A program made the translations under genes and the position numbers. Below the pieces are notes generated by a model. The model ran no database searches and was not told the origin of the DNA. It saw nothing but the letters and a program-made list of their open reading frames with translations. From sequence record NC_019405.1: a DNA stretch of 64,000 nucleotides; one strand, written 5' to 3'. Position 1 is the first letter of the stretch; each line of letters begins with the position of its first letter. This document shows, one piece after another, positions 6,434 through 43,236 of the stretch.

Positions 6434-9400
6434 ATGGCCGCCGCCATTGCCCTTCCGATCGTCTCCGCCATTGTCAGCACGGCGATCAGCTACGCCTTCC
6501 CGAGCGACGGCCCGCGCCTGCGCGACACCAAGGTCTCGGCCTCGACCTACGGCAATGTGATCCCGGAAATCTACGGGACCGCCCGCGTCGGCGGCAACAT
6601 GATCTGGTCCAAGCCGTTCACCGAGAAGAAGAAGAAGAAGCGGGCCGGCAAGGGCGGCTCCTACTACAATGAGTACACCTACTACTGCGACTTCGCCATG
6701 GCGTTCTGCCGGGGTCCGGTCAAGGAAGTGCGCCGCATCTGGGCCGACGGCAAGGTGATCTACGACACCACCGGCGGCTCGGAGGTGATCGACAACAACA
6801 AGTACCGCTTCCGCTTCTATCCCGGCGACGAGGCGCAGCTTCCCGACAGCCTCATCGTCGAGGACAAGGGCGCCGACTACGCCCCCGCCTACCGGGGTCT
6901 CTGCTATGTCGTGTTCGACGACTTCGCCCTGGCCGATTTCGGCAACCGCATCCCGCAGATCATGGCCGAAGTCTACGCTGGAGACGAAGGCGGCGCGGCG
7001 ATCACCGACATCGTCCCGCTGCCCAGTTCTCCGGTCACCGGCGGCTCCTACCAGCTTGGCCAGATGATGATCGACGCCGACCGGGGCTACTTCTACCTCG
7101 TCGATCCGGTGTCCAACCCGGCGGGCACCGTCCTGCGCCGCTTCCTGCTGGCGAACGGCAAGGAAGACCGTCGCGAGATCGTCTCGATCCCGCAGGCCCA
7201 GTTCCCGCCCTCCGTCTATGACAGCCCTGAGCTAACCTCGGTCCGGGGCGTCACTTCCAAGGGCGAGCTTCTCTGCGTCTTCGGTGGCGTCAACAACTAC
7301 ATGCGGATCGAGAAACTCGATCCCTATTCCTGGCAGTCGCTGGGGACGATCGGCCGCAGTTATCCGTTCGAGGGCACGCCCGAGAACAGCCTGGAGCACT
7401 CCAACACCAACTTCGAGATTTCGCGGGACGAGAAAGGGAATTATCTCTGCCTGACGCTGGGGGTGTTTGGCGAGTACAACATCTTCGACCCGAGCGATAT
7501 GTCGTTCAAGGCCAAGGGCGACATGGCGGGCTGGAACGGACCAGCGACGCCGATGTACATCTGCGCCCGCCAGGGCGGCCCGGCGACCAGCCGCCGGTTC
7601 TACCATGTCACCTATGCCGGCGGGGCGTCCTTGCAGGTGTGCAGCCTGGGCGAGGTGCTCTACAACCATCCGGTGGAGTTCCCCGGCAATTCGCAGACCG
7701 CCACCGCTTGGGCCTTCTGGGACGAAGGCGATCCGGGCGTGGTCTTCTTCTATTCCGACGGCCCCAATCGCTACATCGCCAAGTGGTCGGAATCCACCGG
7801 CGTGCTCGCCTGGAAGACTCAGCTTCGCAACTCCGATCCGTTCTGCGGCTATGGGGTCTATGGTCTGCGCGCCCGGATCAAGGATAACGAGTTCCACTGG
7901 GTCTACAACAAGCACCTGTTCTCGATCAACACCGCCACGGGTCAGTGGATCGACCGGACCTTCGACCAGGACTTCTACAAGAGCGACAACGACAAAACCG
8001 CCGAACAGGTCAACGACGGCGACAAGGGCCTGCTGTTGCCCCGCGACATCTCCGAGGACTATGTCATCTACGATCCGCGCCGCAACATCGTGATTTGCGT
8101 CGGACAGATTCAGGGCCAAAACGGCATCGTCCACGTCGGAGGCTACACGGGGGGCAAGACCTCGGTGGGGGCCATTGTCGAGCGTCTTCTGGTCTCGACG
8201 GGGCAGATGACCTCGAACGACTACGACCTGACGCCGCTCTACGACATCCCGGTCTACGGGTACGGCTACGCCTCCTCGACCGACATTAAGTCGATCATCG
8301 CCGAACTGCGCAACCTCTTCATGTTCGACCTCGTCGAAAGCGACGGTCGACTGGTCGCGCGCGTGCGCGGCGATCAGGACCCTGACGCCGAGGTGCCCTG
8401 GAAGCTCCTGGGCTCCCAGAGCGGCCCGACCCCGGACAAGGCCGACTACTGGAAAGAGACCCGGATGTCGGAGTCCGACCTCCCGGCCTCGATCGACCTG
8501 ACCTATTCGAACATCGATGACGACTACAATCCGTCAACGGCCAAGTCCAAGCGGATCGCCTCGCCGGTGGCGACCATGCTGTCGCGTCAACAGGTCAAGG
8601 CCGAGTGCAACCTCGTCATGGACGCGACCGAGGCCAAGAACCGCGTCAACATCATGCTCTACACCCAGTGGGAGGAACGCACGCAGCACCAGACGGCCCT
8701 TCCCTGGCTCTACGCCAATCTCGACGCCTCGGACCTGATCTCGGTGACCATGGAGGACGGCCGCAACTATTTCGAGCGGATCGGTTCGATCGAGTTCGGC
8801 GCCGACTTCTCCTCGCGCCTGGAAACCTATGGCACCGACAGCGGTGCCTACCTTTCGGACAAGACCGGCGACGGCGGCGGCGCTGGCCGTCCGACCGTCG
8901 TGCCGGCCCCCAAGCCGGTGGTGGGCTTCATCCTCAACACCCCACTGCTGCGCGACACCCACGACAGCGGCGGCAACTTCTCCAACTGGTATAGCGCCAT
9001 CGGCGCGGGCGCGCCGGGCGTGTTCCTCGGCGGCACGATGTTCAAGTCCGCCAACGCCCAGGACTATGTCGATCTCTACCAGGAGCCGGAGAGCGCCGAG
9101 TGGGGCACGGTGATGGGGGCCGTGCCCTCCCCCTCGCACGGCTGGTTCGCGCTCGACTGGGAAACGCGCATCACCATCACGCCGGCGGTCGACTTCTTCG
9201 AACTGGAGTCGATCACCGACGACGAGCTTTGGGAAGGGCTCAATCTCGTGGTGATCGGCGACGAGGTCCTCCAGTTCCGCGACGCGGTCCAGAACGCCGA
9301 CGGCACCTGGACGATCTGGAACCTGCTGCGCGGCCGGCGCGGGACGCAGTATGCCTGCGACAATCACAAGGCCGGCGAGCGGTTCGTGTTCCTCGACGAG

Positions 9401-39299: not shown

Positions 39300-39300
39300 G

Positions 39301-39585
39301 GGGGCTACGGGCCGTCCTCCTGCGTTAGCCCCGCCGCCGCGCCTTCCAGGCGGCGAAGGTCGGGACGGAGCCGAAGGCGAGCCGGCCGAGGCAGCGGTTG
39401 GTGAGCAAAAGGAGAACCCGGCGAGCGGCGGAAGGCGTCGTTGACGCCCTCGGACTCGTCAAGCACGTGGTGATGCCGGAAATCACCGCGATCGCGCGGA
39501 CGTCTGGACGTTGCTAGGCGTAAGGCAGGCCTGCCGAGAAGTGGAAATGGCCGGGGCGGGCGGGACTTGACCTCGTCCGCCTTTC
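39301..39585 (+). ncRNA. Candidate ~285-nt structured ncRNA A
   Basis: Follows the promoter above; ends in the hairpin GGCGGGCG/CGTCCGCC plus TTT; no credible ORF. Confidence 0.4.
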
Positions 39586-39595
39586 CGCCTAAGCT
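39567..39595 (+). promoter_or_regulatory. Promoter TTGACC, 17 bp spacer, TAAGCT
   Basis: Canonical spacing; the -35 box lies in the loop of the upstream terminator-like hairpin. Confidence 0.6.
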
Positions 39596-39601
39596 TCCCT
39601 C

Positions 39602-39963
39602 ATTGCAGGCGCAGCACCGCCCTTCGCTAACGGCCCCGAGGGGTACGCAAGGGCTAGAAGCCTTGCCTGGGACAGGACTGCCTCTGATCCAGGAACGCCC
39701 TGGGCCGCGTAGCGCCCATGACGCGAACGCCGGCCGAGAATGGGCGACTAGGCGTGACGGCGGCCAGAGGCCGCAGCGACATTCCAAGCTCGATAGAGCG
39801 ATCGGCGGGCCGGGGCGAAAGCCCTGTTTCGAGAGCCAGGGCAACCCGTCATAGGTCCTGGTCGGGCGACGAGGCAGCAAGTCCCGCGAACGGAGCCTCT
39901 GAGGTGGCGTCACCAAGATGCAGCAGACGCAAAAAGGCCCCGATCGCGAGATCGGGGCCTTTT
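39602..39963 (+). ncRNA. Candidate ~350-nt structured ncRNA B
   Basis: Bounded by a promoter and a strong terminator; GGGC-GAAA-GCCC (39813-39824) and other short hairpins; no credible ORF. Confidence 0.45.
39931..39963. terminator. Bidirectional intrinsic terminator
   Basis: AAAAAGGCCCCGATC-GCGA-GATCGGGGCCTTTT. Confidence 0.85.
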
Positions 39964-39968
39964 CATGT

Positions 39969-40057
39969 TGGAGCTTCGGGAGGGACTCGAACCCTCATAG
40001 GTGTTCCCACCAGCAGAGATTTGCAATCCCGCGCCTAACCTCTCAGTCCACCGAAGC
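39969..40057 (-). tRNA. tRNA-Cys(GCA) with a long (type II) variable arm
   Basis: Acceptor GCTTCGG/CCGAAGC, U73, encoded CCA; anticodon loop TT-GCA-AA; T-arm GAGGG-TTCGAGT-CCCTC; variable hairpin GGTG-GGAA-CACC. Confidence 0.88.
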
Positions 40058-40059
40058 AC

Positions 40060-40235
40060 AAAAGGACCTCGACGCCCGAAGGCCCGAGGTCCGATCCGTA
40101 ACCAGGGGAGGGCCGTAGCTGTCCCCTGACCCTGAACGACAGGTGGCGGGCTTGGTCGTCATCCCGTCAGGCTCGCGGCGCCGCTCGCCTGACCCGCCGA
40201 TATGCCACGAGGGCAGTGATCCGCAGGTCCCCATA
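40060..40235 (-). ncRNA. Candidate ~175-nt structured RNA upstream of tRNA-Cys
   Basis: Internal TCAGGC...GCCTGA hairpin (40167-40192) and a terminal UUCG-capped hairpin (40064-40092) with a U4 tract just before the tRNA. Confidence 0.3.
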
Positions 40236-40241
40236 AATAGC

Positions 40242-40276
40242 AAAAAGGCCGCGATCCGCGAGGACCGTGGCCTTTT
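40242..40276. terminator. Bidirectional intrinsic terminator
   Basis: AAAAAGGCCGCGATCC-GCGA-GGACCGTGGCCTTTT. Confidence 0.8.
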
Positions 40277-41155
40277 CGTTTTCCGACGGGCTGAGACTAC
40301 ACCCATCAGCAATCCCGCTTCGAGGATTATTCCCCAGGTGCGACCCCAGGTATTCCCTCGACGTCCACCAGACCCCTTGCGGTAGTCCAGTCCGAGATCA
40401 TCGCCGCCGTTCTTGCGCACCCCGAAGGGATTGCGGGTCTGGCGTTTGACCCATCATGGCGAACTACTCGACAGTTCCTTCCCCGCTGGGCTTGCGACCC
40501 ACTCACCGGCGCTAACCGGCTGACGAAGCTCTTCCTATCGACACCTCGCGGGCTTGCGACCCTTGAGATGACTCCGTTACCCGAGGGCCGGAGCATTTGG
40601 CGACTTACGTCCGCCACTGGACCAGTCTTTGCGTTTTTCATCGAAGCGGGGATTGAACCCGCGACCGACAGCTAGGACGGCTGTTGCACTACCACTGTGC
40701 TATTCGCAAACCCACCAAGACGTGCTGGTCCAGTTGTTCCCAGAGCTTTTGACCCCAGAAATGCAACACGCCTCATATCTTTCGCCTTGCGGGCTACTCG
40801 ACTGCTCTTCAGGACCCCGTCTCCCCCGACCTTTCGGCCAGGATGCCCAGCACCCCTCGAACTGAAGCAAAGCTCTTCACCGCGAAGTGTCGAACCCTGC
40901 AACCCAAACGGTTATCCGTACTCCCTAGACGCGCTTGCACGGGATAGTCCGCTTGCGACGGACTGGCGGTTAAAGCCTCGGAGTTACCCCGGCCCCGCCT
41001 TGTCTCCCACGGTCTTCAGGTCTATCCCCTTTTGCAAGAGGCGGCCAGCTTCCCAGCCCGGACCCGTCGGCTTCCTCTGTCCTCTTGCGAGGTCGGGCGG
41101 CCTATGGGAGACCGTCCCTGTCACCCCGTCGCCGGGGCTTTCGTCAGAAGCGACG
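40277..41155 (-). ncRNA. Large (~880 nt) structured ncRNA, GOLLD-like candidate, with an embedded tRNA-like domain
   Basis: Own promoter (41161-41189) and terminator (40242-40276); no credible ORF; many - strand GNRA hairpins (GCAA at 40488-40500, 40550-40562, 40947-40963, 41081-41092; GAAA at 40830-40837). The family assignment is an inference. Confidence 0.62.
40638..40709 (-). pseudogene. Degenerate tRNA-like element (nominal anticodon TCC) inside the large ncRNA
   Basis: D-arm GCAC-AGTGGTA-GTGC, anticodon stem ACAGC/GCTGT with loop CGTCCTA (G33, not U33), T-arm GCGGG-TTCAATC-CCCGC; broken acceptor stem and no CCA. Confidence 0.7.
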
Positions 41156-41160
41156 ATGAC

Positions 41161-41189
41161 GTTCTAGCGACAGCCCACGTCGTCGTCAA
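41161..41189 (-). promoter_or_regulatory. Promoter of the large ncRNA (TTGACG, 17 bp spacer, TAGAAC)
   Basis: Canonical spacing on the - strand, divergent from the tmRNA promoter. Confidence 0.68.
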
Positions 41190-41245
41190 CGACTTTTTAC
41201 ATCCCGACGCGGAATTTTTTCGACAGTCGTGGATGACGACAGTGC

Positions 41246-41274
41246 TTGACATTCTCGTAGACCCATGCTAGGTG
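41246..41274 (+). promoter_or_regulatory. tmRNA promoter (TTGACA ... GCTAGGT)
   Basis: TTGACA at 41246-41251 with a GCTAG -10-like element 16-17 bp downstream. Confidence 0.6.
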
Positions 41275-41275
41275 T

Positions 41276-41658
41276 CGGAAATCGTTGTAATTCGGACAAC
41301 GGAACTGGCGGCAAGACAGGGGTGCGAATCCCCTCGCCTCCACCATCGACGCCCGGCGCTGGGAGTACGCGACTCCTGGGCAGGGAGTGTTACCCTGGCG
41401 GGCTGCGGCCCGAGCCAAAGGTAGCCGGGCGTCGTTGATGGGGGCGACTAGCTTTCGATTGGCGCTCGGGACTGAAAGACGCAACGGTGGGTGACCTCCA
41501 CATCGGCTTGCCGGTGATCGGGTCAGGCAACAGTAAATGTCGCCGCCAATGACAACGACGTCGTGGCTTTCGCCTCGGCTCGTGAAGCCATCGCCGCCTA
41601 ATAAGCGGTAGAGGAGCCCGCCGGGAGCTTGGCAACAGAATCCCGGCAACCCCCTTTC
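41276..41658 (+). ncRNA. ssrA: Circularly permuted (two-piece, alphaproteobacterial-type) tmRNA
   Basis: Acceptor piece with T-arm AGGGG-TGCGAAT-CCCCT and CGCCTCC-A-CCA (ends 41345); intervening stem TCGACGCCCGGC/GCCGGGCGTCG; coding piece begins GGGGGCG (41440) giving a G3.U70 Ala acceptor stem; tag frame AANDNDVVAFASAREAIAA then TAA TAA (41542-41604); downstream GGCAACAGAA motif. Confidence 0.92.
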
Positions 41659-41782
41659 GCAGGCGGGAACACCAACAGGCGATCTGTCGGGCGACCGATT
41701 TCCGATCCGTGTTCCCGTCTTCGAAAGGTGGTCAGGCCTACCCTCTTGGTGTGCTATCCAAGGGTCTGGCCACTTTACAGAA

Positions 41783-41861
41783 CGCGGGGTAGAGGAGTCC
41801 GGTTGTCCTCGTCTGGCTCATAACCAGGAGATCGTGGGTTCAAATCCCACTCCCGCTCCCA
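41783..41861 (+). tRNA. tRNA-Met(CAT), initiator-like
   Basis: CGCGGGG/TCCCGCT acceptor with a C1-U72 mismatch, loop CT-CAT-AA, T-loop TTCAAAT, encoded CCA; only two of the three anticodon-stem G-C pairs of canonical fMet. Confidence 0.88.
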
Positions 41862-41868
41862 ATGCGAA

Positions 41869-42000
41869 CGCCGGCTGTTGAGAACGACGGCGTGACAAGC
41901 TCGGAGAGAACGAGCACTCCAGTCCGGGGTATGAGGCCGGACTAGCGGACGCCGTAGCGATTGCAGGCGTGACACCCGGAGATAGCGGGACCGGCTTTCC
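41869..42000 (+). ncRNA. Candidate multi-hairpin small RNA
   Basis: GCCGG/CCGGC-TTT closing stem, ACGGCGT/ACGCCGT, GCTCG/CGAGC, AGTCCGG/CCGGACT and CCCG/CGGG hairpins. Confidence 0.3.
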
Positions 42001-42087
42001 GAGCCGCATGCTCGGCGCGTAAGACCGCAGGCCTCGGCCATCGGGCAGTGTCAGGGGATGAGGCTAGTCCTCGGCTAACCACCTAGC

Positions 42088-42227
42088 GGTGGAGCTAGGG
42101 CATGCGGTTCGGAAAGCCGGGTTCGCGGTTCGTCCGCTACGAGATGGAGATGTCGCCGGTTCGAGTCCGGCAGGTCCCCCAAAAGGAGGCCTTAGCTCAG
42201 TCGGTAGAGCGCTCCTATCCCACCTTT
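42088..42227 (+). ncRNA. Circularly permuted tRNA mimic, YrlA Y-RNA-like candidate
   Basis: The T-arm GCCGG-TTCGAGT-CCGGC comes BEFORE the D-arm GCTC-AGTCGGTA-GAGC; the acceptor-like stem AGGTCCC/GG(A)GGCCT is closed by a CCAAAA loop; there is no anticodon loop; the ends can pair (GGTGG/CCACC) and finish in TTT. Confidence 0.62.
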
Positions 42228-42312
42228 GGTACGGTGGCTCGACAGGTAAGGCATCGGCCTCATAAGCCGAGGGTTCGTCCCAATCCTGGTTCAAATCCAG
42301 GTCGTACCTCCA
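42228..42312 (+). tRNA. tRNA with CAT anticodon, long (type II) variable arm and U73 (Met or Ile2 uncertain)
   Basis: GGTACGG/TCGTACC acceptor, TCGGC-CTCATAA-GCCGA, variable hairpin GGG-TTCGT-CCC, T-arm CCTGG-TTCAAAT-CCAGG, encoded CCA. Confidence 0.85.
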
Positions 42313-42386
42313 AATAGACGCTTGACCCCCGGCCGCAGGCTGCTAAGCTTCCCCGGTCGGGATCGTCCCGCGTCCTTTCCAAGGTC

Positions 42387-42417
42387 AAGCCCCCGGAGCC
42401 TCGCTTCGGGGGCTTTT
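42387..42417. terminator. Intrinsic terminator at the end of the RNA island
   Basis: AAGCCCCCGGAG...TTCGGGGGCTTTT. Confidence 0.75.
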
Positions 42418-42770
42418 CAGTTCTTGACCACCCGCAGGCGCCGGGCCTCGTTGGCGCGTTCCTCCGCCGCCACGCGCGAGACGTCTTGCAGATGCGCCTT
42501 GGCGATCAGATCGGGCGCGCCCACGGCCCGGAAGGGTACCTTGACGGAAAGGTCGACATAGCGCCGCAAGAGCGGCTCGAACTCCAGACCGCGCGCCTGG
42601 GCGATCCGCGACAATGCGCCGGCGACGATCGCCACGACCAGGACGTTGGTCGGTGTCTCCTTGGTCAGGGTCCAGATGCCCGGTATAGACTGCCCAGGAT
42701 GAAGTTCCTGCCGCGCCACGTCATCGGCGGCGGCGCGGAAGAGGTTCTCGTAAGGGACGTTTTCGAGCAT
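42417..42770 (-). CDS. Hypothetical protein (~117 aa)
   Basis: Start MLENVPYE chosen within the longer ORF-track frame; helical sequence. Confidence 0.55.
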   Translation of the reverse strand: MLENVPYENLFRAAADDVARQELHPGQSIPGIWTLTKETPTNVLVVAIVAGALSRIAQARGLEFEPLLRRYVDLSVKVPFRAVGAPDLIAKAHLQDVSRVAAEERANEARRLRVVKN

Positions 42771-42849
42771 ACGACAACGATAGCGATCTTTTGCCGCCTG
42801 TCTACCCTCTACTCTTGATAGTAGTAAAGCCCCGATTTCAACATAAGAG

Positions 42850-43236
42850 CTAAAGCCGTCCGCCGTAATAGTCCCGCCACATTCCCTCCCAATAGTCGAT
42901 GTGCTTCTCGGTGCAGTCCGGGCAATACCGACGGTCCCGGTTGGGGTCCTCGCCCTTGCCATCCCAGTGGTAGCAGGTCATTGAGCCGACCATCCCCAGG
43001 CGCCAGAACGTCCCGCAGTGTTCGCATCCCCCAAGGGCGATGTTCTGCATCGTCCGGTGGTGGTTCCACTTGCAGAGCCAGTTGAACCAGAGTTCATAAT
43101 AGAGGGCGTCGCGGATGCTGCTGTACTGGGTGAGGCGGACCTGAACGACCTTGCGCCGGCCGTTAGGCTTCAGGTCGCGGTCATAGGTCGGCCTGTAGAA
43201 GACTTTGATCTTCGGAAACCAGCGGCGTTTCTTCAC
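42850..43236 (-). CDS. Hypothetical Cys-rich (Zn-binding) protein
   Basis: GTG start overlapping the helicase stop (GTGA); CEHC and CPDC motifs. Confidence 0.6.
   Translation of the reverse strand: MKKRRWFPKIKVFYRPTYDRDLKPNGRRKVVQVRLTQYSSIRDALYYELWFNWLCKWNHHRTMQNIALGGCEHCGTFWRLGMVGSMTCYHWDGKGEDPNRDRRYCPDCTEKHIDYWEGMWRDYYGGRL

Follow-up and report, generated by a model that had tools for sequence, protein, structure and literature searches.

What does a phage genome encode in a structured stretch to which its GenBank record assigns solely a tRNA gene? The locus in question lies on the minus strand of a 64,000-nucleotide piece of record NC_019405.1 (the window; its coordinates are those of the record minus 62000), which comes from Caulobacter phage phiCbK, and the only feature annotated there is 'tRNA-Gly' ('tRNA-Lys' in the related phages Magneto, Karma and Swift). 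A previous sequence-only reading of the locus had proposed an alphaproteobacterial phage as the source and, as the product, either a member of the GOLLD family of giant RNAs or an analogous new RNA. The source was named correctly: the 971 bases round the element are 100% identical in the phiCbK records (NC_019405.1, JX100813, JX163858) and likewise in those of Ccr32, Ccr34 and S2L, and other Shapirovirus phages (Ccr2, Ccr5, Ccr10, Ccr29, Magneto, Karma, Swift, RBC57, BL57) share 94.8–99.7% identity. The element is a GOLLD RNA gene with the architecture of that family, located in a tRNA and transfer-messenger RNA (tmRNA) island of a virulent phage, where it is flanked by tRNA-Cys, a two-piece tmRNA and two tRNA-Met genes. 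The gene is predicted to be transcribed as one RNA from a sigma-73-like promoter to an intrinsic terminator, and this RNA would build a cage with an embedded tRNA-like module; as a whole, this explanation is in our judgement very probable.

The identity rests on the Rfam model of GOLLD (RF02032), a family that reportedly goes back to Weinberg et al. (2009). On the minus strand the model matches positions 40288–40774 over its full length (model positions 1–416 of 416) with 165.3 bits against a gathering score of 150 and an E-value of 1.4e-44, and a local search reproduced the match; of the two products proposed earlier, GOLLD is therefore the one that holds and the analogous new RNA is not. The model also matches all Shapirovirus relatives and seven further alphaproteobacterial phages, scoring 169–170 bits in Magneto, Swift and BL57, 193.5 in Cp1R7A-A1, 186.6 in Phosso and 150.7–169.6 in MD18, DSS3_MAL1 and DSS3P8. 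For ROOL, another large phage RNA, there was no Rfam match at the gathering score in the window, nor at E<=1 in 39300–42900. It is extremely improbable that the locus represents a new class of giant RNA merely resembling GOLLD: its score is just 15 bits over the cut-off and no sequence similarity could be detected between its 5' domain and that of env-38, a marine GOLLD of known structure, but the match runs end to end with few non-canonical pairs, closer relatives reach 193 bits, and divergence of the 5' region has been described as a trait of GOLLD itself.

Other features of the strand agree with what had been noticed from the letters. GNRA loops were said to be specific to the minus strand, and eight GNRA-capped hairpins are indeed found there against two on the plus strand (shuffled sequences have a mean of 2.1, and 3 of 1000 reach eight); within the window the GNRA-hairpin score is highest in the GOLLD region. 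The folding energy is -400.5 kcal/mol on the minus strand (z-score -3.8) and -334.9 on the plus strand (z-score -1.2). The repeated 13-mer GGGTCGCAAGCCC does occur twice, on the minus strand only, at 40562–40550 and 40500–40488, although what each copy really forms is a hairpin of the GOLLD consensus, with a CGCAA pentaloop closed by U.G.

The finding is a correct rediscovery of a known RNA and not a new RNA class, since the phiCbK interval (NC_019405.1:c102774-102288) is already listed as GOLLD in Supplementary File 3, the GOLLD alignment of Kretsch et al. 2025 (PMC12286853), together with Shapirovirus, Bertelyvirus, Mesorhizobium, roseophage and Erythrobacter phage hits, and since tRNAs embedded in the GOLLD linker have been described (PMC6582537, PMC12286853, PMC12990946). 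According to the 2012 genome paper, tRNAs were all that Rfam detected in phiCbK, a result that Rfam release 15, in which GOLLD matches, does not reproduce. What appears to be unreported is that GOLLD and the tmRNA are missing from the annotation of the records and of the 2012 paper, the variant 5' domain of alphaproteobacterial phages, and the switching of the embedded anticodon loop described below.

Could the stretch nevertheless be ordinary intergenic DNA with one tRNA gene, or hold an unannotated small protein gene? GenBank has solely tRNA-Gly or tRNA-Lys here, and the earlier description of the stretch as free of open reading frames (ORFs) was not literally true, this GC-rich DNA having mechanical ORFs of up to 156 amino acids. 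In phage BL57 a coding sequence for a 68-residue 'hypothetical protein', BL57_146c (locus L004, 1510–1716), lies within the 5' domain, in the orientation of GOLLD, and was probably called as a gene in error. Four ORFs were tested and none belongs to a Pfam or PHROGs family, and indels of one nucleotide in BL57 and Swift break the mechanical ORFs among relatives that are 95–99% identical; on both counts the protein-coding reading was rejected. The strong RNA-type covariation described next and the covariance-model matches refute this explanation, to which we give hardly any credence, and the present release does not bear out the 2012 statement on 'Rfam tRNAs only'.

GOLLD RNAs have a poorly conserved 5' region of about 400 nucleotides that lies outside the Rfam model (Kretsch et al. 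2025, PMC12286853). In phiCbK the corresponding domain occupies about 41155–40775, some 380 nucleotides of GNRA-rich helices contiguous with the Rfam region. Relatives were gathered by the motif at the domain boundary, GCAAGNNGAAAG..GGYGUGUWGYAUU, which yielded 35 IMG/VR contigs in addition to phage records, and the 380 nucleotides upstream of this motif align through a fixed order of motifs. RNAalifold predicted 48 pairs in the 5' domain, 37 of them changed on both sides. A long-range helix among these (GCAAGCC/GGYGUGU, columns 153–159 with 551–557) was dropped because it shows no two-sided change and its 3' strand belongs to an Rfam hairpin. In the 42 pairs and 10 helices that remain, 91.5% of the cells are paired across 35 homologues, compared with 38–41% when partners are slid by 1–3 columns; the covariation score is 0.81 against 0.12–0.15 in the slid controls, and none of 500 shuffles scored as high. 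Homologues lacking compensatory base changes had been named as evidence that would speak against the RNA; instead, 37 of the 42 retained pairs have changed on both sides, and the stem that closes the linker (see below) shows up to four Watson-Crick types per position.

Covariance models of helices 5–10 (R1) and of the 5'-most 100 nucleotides (R2) were built from 32 sequences, with all Caulobacter phages excluded. R1 has one match in the whole window, at 40776–40924 on the minus strand (74.7 bits, E 9.3e-18, full model), which abuts the Rfam match, and it also finds the locus of Erythrobacter phage L02; helices 5–10 are 84–100% paired, with changes on both sides. For the distal part of about 230 nucleotides (41156–40925) the evidence of membership in the GOLLD 5' domain is weaker. 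This part is near-invariant in Shapirovirus and can be aligned motif by motif (CUCCCA, GCAAG, AUAG..GAAG) with 32 other 5' domains, and helices 1–4 covary across the family alignment. Moreover, the first small hairpin and the GNRA-capped second hairpin recur at the phiCbK spacing in Brevundimonas phage Bajun and in Caulobacter phage CcrBL9; the second reads CCCCG-GCGA-CGGGG in phiCbK and CCGG-GCAA-CCGG and CCGGG-GCAA-CUCGG in the other two phages, three differing sequences that therefore represent compensatory changes. These observations suggest that the distal segment is part of the same domain.

R1 has no match in the GOLLDs of Bajun and CcrBL9, whose 5' domains are consequently assigned to a different variant. 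The two loci (L048 and L047, respectively) have the promoter and first two hairpins as in phiCbK, followed by the other 5'-domain variant, and no tRNA-like insert. As promoter and hairpins are shared and the remainder of the 5' domain and the insert differ, 5' domains and linker cargo have been exchanged within a single subfamily, the Dolichocephalovirinae.

The variability of the 5' domain raises the question whether the upstream 380 nucleotides are a separate small RNA or leader, with only 40288–40774 being GOLLD. The Rfam model is confined to the latter interval, the distal 5' part is not recognised by the model from other lineages, and among Shapirovirus the 5' domain is far more variable than the 3' domain. 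Against such a division, there is no promoter-like or terminator-like site between 41160 and 40288, in 35 relatives the same motifs continue in colinear order into the Rfam region, R1 joins the Rfam match seamlessly (40776 and 40774), and a variable 5' region of about 400 nucleotides unmodelled by Rfam is a known GOLLD trait. Two RNAs are thus very unlikely, and we treat the stretch as one GOLLD RNA.

The signals at the two ends of this RNA are consistent with a single gene. The promoter proposed earlier (TTGACG, 17 nucleotides, TAGAAC) is present exactly as described, at 41189–41161. Because the last base of its -10 hexamer is C, it was missed by a generic sigma-70 scan, and it is recognisable only against a Caulobacter consensus and through conservation. 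The consensus for the Caulobacter sigma-73 factor is reportedly GCTANAWC (attributed to Malakooti and Ely, 1995), which we take the extended -10 element GCTAGAAC (41168–41161) to fit. The -35 hexamer is invariant in Shapirovirus (five phages), the sole change in the -10 element falls on the N of GCTANAWC, and the spacer of BL57 has eight changes; BL57, Bajun and CcrBL9 retain TTGAC and CTA.A.C in place, with a diverging spacer between them, and in the last two the hexamers stand directly before the conserved first hairpins. Hexamers conserved over a drifting spacer are the footprint expected of a real promoter, and the site is a predicted promoter on these grounds. The terminator that had been placed at the other end was found again, as a hairpin with a U-run at 40276–40242, which is also the 3'-terminal hairpin of the minimum free energy fold. 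The predicted transcript would start near 41155, end in the U-run near 40242 and measure about 915 nucleotides. The features of the locus are compiled in Table 1.

Table 1. Elements of the phiCbK GOLLD gene in transcript order (window coordinates)
Feature	Position	Strand	Remarks
Promoter (predicted)	41161–41189	-	-35 TTGACG 41189–41184, 17-nucleotide spacer, -10 TAGAAC 41166–41161
Distal 5' domain (weaker evidence)	40925–41156	-	Hairpin 41156–41141, GCGA-capped hairpin 41137–41124, further GNRA hairpins; lineage-specific in detail
Proximal 5' domain, helices 5–10	40776–40924	-	Ends in conserved GAGUAG-CCC-GCAA-GGC-GAAAG hairpin 40802–40779
Rfam GOLLD region	40288–40774	-	Last hairpin of 5' region, linker, conserved 3' domain ending GGGUGUAGUCUCAGCCC (40304–40288)
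Hairpin, Rfam model positions 1–62, UCAAAAG loop	40717–40774	-	3' bulge holds pseudoknot 5' strand
Pseudoknot 5' strand CUGGACCAG	40725–40733	-	Pairs with 40625–40617
tRNA-like module	40637–40710	-	GenBank tRNA-Gly(UCC); D arm 40700–40686, anticodon arm 40684–40668, T arm 40662–40646; ARAGORN
Anticodon loop CGUCCUA (G33, U37, non-canonical)	40673–40679	-	CUCUUAA in Magneto, Swift and Karma, CAUCCUA in BL57; module otherwise identical
Pseudoknot 3' strand CUGGUCCAG	40617–40625	-	Conserved AAAAACGCAAAGA just before
First 3'-domain 13-mer copy GGGUCGCAAGCCC	40550–40562	-	U.G-closed CGCAA hairpin
Second 13-mer copy GGGUCGCAAGCCC	40488–40500	-	U.G-closed CGCAA hairpin
Intrinsic terminator	40242–40276	-	A-tract, GC-rich hairpin, U5; form bidirectional; scan on both strands

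Within the GOLLD region, a tRNA had been described as inserted into a GGACCAG/CUGGUCC stem. The helix is real and covaries, although it comprises nine base pairs (40733–40725 with 40625–40617) and not seven; because the 3' bulge of the first hairpin in the Rfam model provides its 5' strand, it is the pseudoknot that closes the GOLLD linker, and the tRNA sits in this linker and not in a stem. In 35 sequences with 20 distinct 5' strands, positions 4–9 of the nine always form standard pairs, and five of these six show two to four Watson-Crick types. The enclosed loop is about 95 nucleotides long when it holds a tRNA-like module and 53–68 nucleotides when it does not.

The degenerate tRNA of the sequence-only reading is likewise present, with a defective acceptor, at slightly different coordinates (40637–40710 in place of 40638–40709). 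ARAGORN identifies it as tRNA-Gly(UCC). Its D, anticodon and T arms are canonical, and the Rfam tRNA model matches it locally (model positions 4–67) with 42.5 bits against a gathering score of 29, compared with 56.1 bits for the Magneto module. In the acceptor stem, pair 1:72 is U.G and pairs 4–7 are formed, and positions 2:71 (U.U) and 3:70 (G.A) are mismatched; there is no CCA, and the 3' side runs directly into the conserved GOLLD sequence AAAAACGCAAAGA. Among 44 sequences examined, a module at this point could be parsed in 28, giving 24 distinct modules, and mismatches at 2:71 and 3:70 are typical of the acceptors. The modules of loci L025 and L041 carry a UCA 'anticodon' reminiscent of an opal suppressor. 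As to decoding capacity, phiCbK has free-standing genes for two tRNA-Gly(UCC), a tRNA-Lys(CUU) and a tRNA-Lys(UUU), so the idea that the embedded tRNA supplies a missing isoacceptor was rejected for this phage; in several related contigs, too, the flanking DNA examined carries a free-standing tRNA with the embedded anticodon.

Might the module be the precursor of a real tRNA? RNase P and the 3' enzymes would then cut it out and leave a two-piece GOLLD held together by the pseudoknot, much as the tmRNA of alphaproteobacteria is a two-piece molecule. Alternatively, the cage would delay its maturation, as in the 'inhibited storage' proposed for embedded tRNAs (PMC12990946). The canonical arms speak for a precursor, as do U33 in 21 of 24 relatives and a purine at position 37 in 22 of 24 (phiCbK and BL57 are exceptions), an anticodon loop that stays constant over 19–27% divergence in some lineages and so implies selection on the anticodon, the annotation as a tRNA in GenBank, and the length of the pseudoknot, whose nine pairs could hold two pieces. 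Two loci, L021 and L045, have perfect acceptor stems, and in L045 the stem is followed by an encoded CCA (the tRNA array of that locus also contains a CUA, or amber, tRNA). The phiCbK module itself, however, has the two acceptor mismatches, no CCA, G33 and U37, a lower tRNA score than that of Magneto and an anticodon that duplicates free-standing phage tRNAs; Bajun has the same tRNA-Cys–GOLLD–tmRNA synteny with a GOLLD that lacks the insert; and a Northern blot of the GOLLD of Mycobacterium aubagnense, which contains a pseudo-tRNA, showed no separate RNA (PMC6582537). For these reasons the module most likely stays part of the GOLLD RNA and is not released as a working tRNA, and we consider the precursor explanation unlikely.

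The anticodon loop of the module switches abruptly between closely related phages. The 'anticodon' is UCC in phiCbK and BL57 and CUU in Magneto, Swift and Karma. Between phiCbK and Magneto, five of the seven loop nucleotides differ, compared with 2 of 854 elsewhere (Fisher p 1e-10). More generally, the 3' domain is almost invariant among Shapirovirus GOLLDs, and what differs is concentrated in the 5' domain and in a run of five bases, 40678–40674, that corresponds to loop positions 33–37. In a further case, L022 or L024 differs from L020 at five of seven loop positions at 8% divergence; in other GOLLD pairs, by contrast, the loop is unchanged across 19–27% divergence. A tree of 25 GOLLDs computed with the loop masked requires at least 15 triplet changes among 10 states, and as many as four loops occur on one and the same anticodon stem. 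A partner for the loop within the RNA (a kissing loop or specifier) was considered and rejected because none of the few other positions at which Shapirovirus GOLLDs differ varies in step with the loop; for the same reason, any partner would have to lie outside the GOLLD RNA. No paper on the switching of embedded anticodon loops was found in the literature, and as a meaningful signal the switching is suggestive rather than conclusive.

One way to read these data is that the anticodon stem-loop is the working part of the element, the cage displaying or shielding many copies of the loop and the phages retargeting it by swapping loops. The outside reader could be, for example, a host anticodon nuclease or other tRNA-targeting defence (the loop acting as a decoy), a synthetase, a modification enzyme or the ribosome. 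This idea is favoured by the abruptness of the swaps and the stasis elsewhere, the retention of U33 and a purine at 37, the external location of the partner and the duplication of the anticodon by free-standing tRNAs. On the other hand, across the family the triplet does not exceed other variable positions in entropy, recombination among co-circulating phages could move loops without selection, and the non-canonical phiCbK loop may be decaying. We therefore regard the idea as improbable as it stands.

Taken together, the data allow the following working model of the phiCbK GOLLD. A host-type, sigma-73-like promoter (41189–41161) would drive a minus-strand RNA of about 915 nucleotides up to the terminator (40276–40242). 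The 5' domain (about 41155–40775) is followed by the hairpin 40774–40717, whose bulge pairs with 40625–40617 in the nine-pair pseudoknot, closing a linker of about 95 nucleotides with the module (40710–40637), and the conserved 3' domain runs to 40288. By analogy with homologues studied by electron cryomicroscopy (cryo-EM), the RNA would assemble without protein into a closed homo-oligomeric cage: the env-38 GOLLD forms a 14-mer of D7 symmetry in which linker nucleotides 497–538 lie inside the lumen (Kretsch et al. 2025, PMC12286853), and the 3' domain of the Streptococcus agalactiae GOLLD alone forms 8-, 10- and 12-mers with the linker facing inward (PMC12990946). The tRNA-like modules of phiCbK would by the same analogy face the lumen, as the linkers do in these two cages. 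The biological role of the phiCbK GOLLD, as of the whole family, is a matter of speculation; ideas in print include the encapsulation of tRNAs or ribosomes and the inhibited storage of an embedded tRNA (PMC12286853, PMC12990946). The role that we favour, speculatively, is that the cage might act in the tRNA and translation economy of the phage during lytic growth by presenting or shielding the anticodon stem-loop, which some external factor that reads anticodons would recognise.

Several points weigh against this model. To our knowledge, no function has been established for GOLLD since 2009, although the structure of the cage was solved in 2025. The promoter, the start site and the single transcript are predictions. 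The second covariance model, R2, gave only 6.2 bits (E 0.29) at the expected place, a third-ranked and non-significant hit, and homology of the distal 5' part with that of other lineages is unproven. A search of the env-38 sequence with a 5'-domain profile (nhmmer) gave no match, the env-38 text used being imperfect (815 nucleotides for 833 residues); this result fits the divergence that is known for the 5' regions of GOLLD. A folded insert of 74 nucleotides in the linker might alter assembly. Finally, with perfect seven-pair acceptor stems in L021 and L045 and a mostly canonical U33 and purine 37, functional tRNAs might be released in some lineages.

The surroundings of the gene contain further features of interest. 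On the plus strand at 41253–41692, divergent from the GOLLD promoter, there is a two-piece (permuted) tmRNA gene of the alphaproteobacterial type with the tag peptide VAANDNDVVAFASAREAIAA; the feature is not in the NC_019405 record and is not mentioned by the 2012 genome paper. A tmRNA adjoins GOLLD also in Bajun, DSS3P8, DSS3_MAL1 and MD18, and at the IMG/VR loci L019 and L041 it lies a few kilobases away. An inverted repeat, GTCGTCGTCAACGAC (41179–41193), overlaps the -35 element of GOLLD and reads on the plus strand as a terminator-like hairpin with a T-run; it might serve to insulate the two divergent promoters, of tmRNA and of GOLLD, from each other. On the other side, tRNA-Cys directly follows GOLLD in phiCbK, Bajun, L011, L032, L037 and L043. 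In phiCbK (39969–40241, minus strand, for tRNA-Cys and the gap together) the two are separated by a structured spacer of about 180 nucleotides (z-score -2.05), at the end of which, just upstream of tRNA-Cys, stands a second terminator-like hairpin (40085–40064). Between the two tRNA-Met genes, at 42147–42214 on the plus strand, there is a sub-threshold match to YrlA (29.7 bits against a gathering score of 69, E 0.0013), a Y RNA-like molecule with a tRNA-like domain. Far from the locus, at 7516–7611 on the minus strand, ARAGORN reports a 96-nucleotide 'tRNA-???' with the four-base anticodon ccgc, where Rfam has no tRNA match.

The phiCbK gene places a GOLLD in one of the best laboratory phage–host pairs, that with Caulobacter crescentus NA1000/CB15. 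The GOLLDs of phiCbK, Magneto and BL57, near-identical except for the anticodon loop, form with the insert-free GOLLD of Bajun a natural series for the role of the linker cargo. As a practical matter, the tRNA-Gly and tRNA-Lys annotations and the coding sequence BL57_146c should be re-annotated as parts of the GOLLD gene.

How does the phiCbK RNA compare with known systems? With env-38 and the GOLLD family as described, it shares the conserved 3' domain, in which the CGCAA hairpins and the terminal GUA.UCUCAGCC hairpin are both found, some 400 nucleotides of variable 5' region, a linker placed after the first conserved hairpin, a location among phage tRNA genes and a total length above 800 nucleotides. 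It differs in being GC-rich (60%) and alphaproteobacterial and in having a folded tRNA-like module in the linker, which in env-38 is a disordered stretch of about 40 nucleotides. The GOLLDs of Mycobacterium and Mycolicibacterium (PMC6582537; Morgado et al. 2020 via PMC12990946) similarly have a tRNA-like element in the linker (J13/15), apparently a defective one, and lie in a tRNA array. They belong to another phylum and have another 5' domain, and their embedded element is reported as tRNA-Phe, whereas that of phiCbK reads Gly(UCC) and those of its sister phages Lys(CUU); the phiCbK gene, in addition, is found in a virulent model phage and has its own predicted promoter and terminator.

Other alphaproteobacterial GOLLDs, those of Cp1R7A-A1 (Mesorhizobium), Phosso (Sinorhizobium), the roseophages DSS3P8, DSS3_MAL1 and MD18, Erythrobacter phage L02 and about 35 IMG/VR contigs, share the 5'-domain variant with the R1 motif GAGUAG..GCAAG..GAAAG, the pseudoknot, the insertion point of the module and often an adjoining two-piece tmRNA. 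Their identity to phiCbK is at most 60–72%, the distal 5' hairpins of phiCbK are lineage-specific, and their 'anticodons' correspond to Leu, Arg, Glu, Asn, Lys, Ile and UCA. ROOL, a phage RNA nanocage of eight subunits, resembles GOLLD in being a large ornate phage RNA near tRNA islands that forms a cage with a disordered internal linker, but is unrelated to it in sequence and fold. Finally, tmRNA, YrlA and viral tRNA-like structures also have a tRNA-shaped module that serves within a larger functional RNA and not in decoding. They mimic mainly the acceptor and T arms, the parts concerned with aminoacylation or processing, whereas in the phiCbK module the acceptor is degraded and it is the anticodon arm that is kept and varied.

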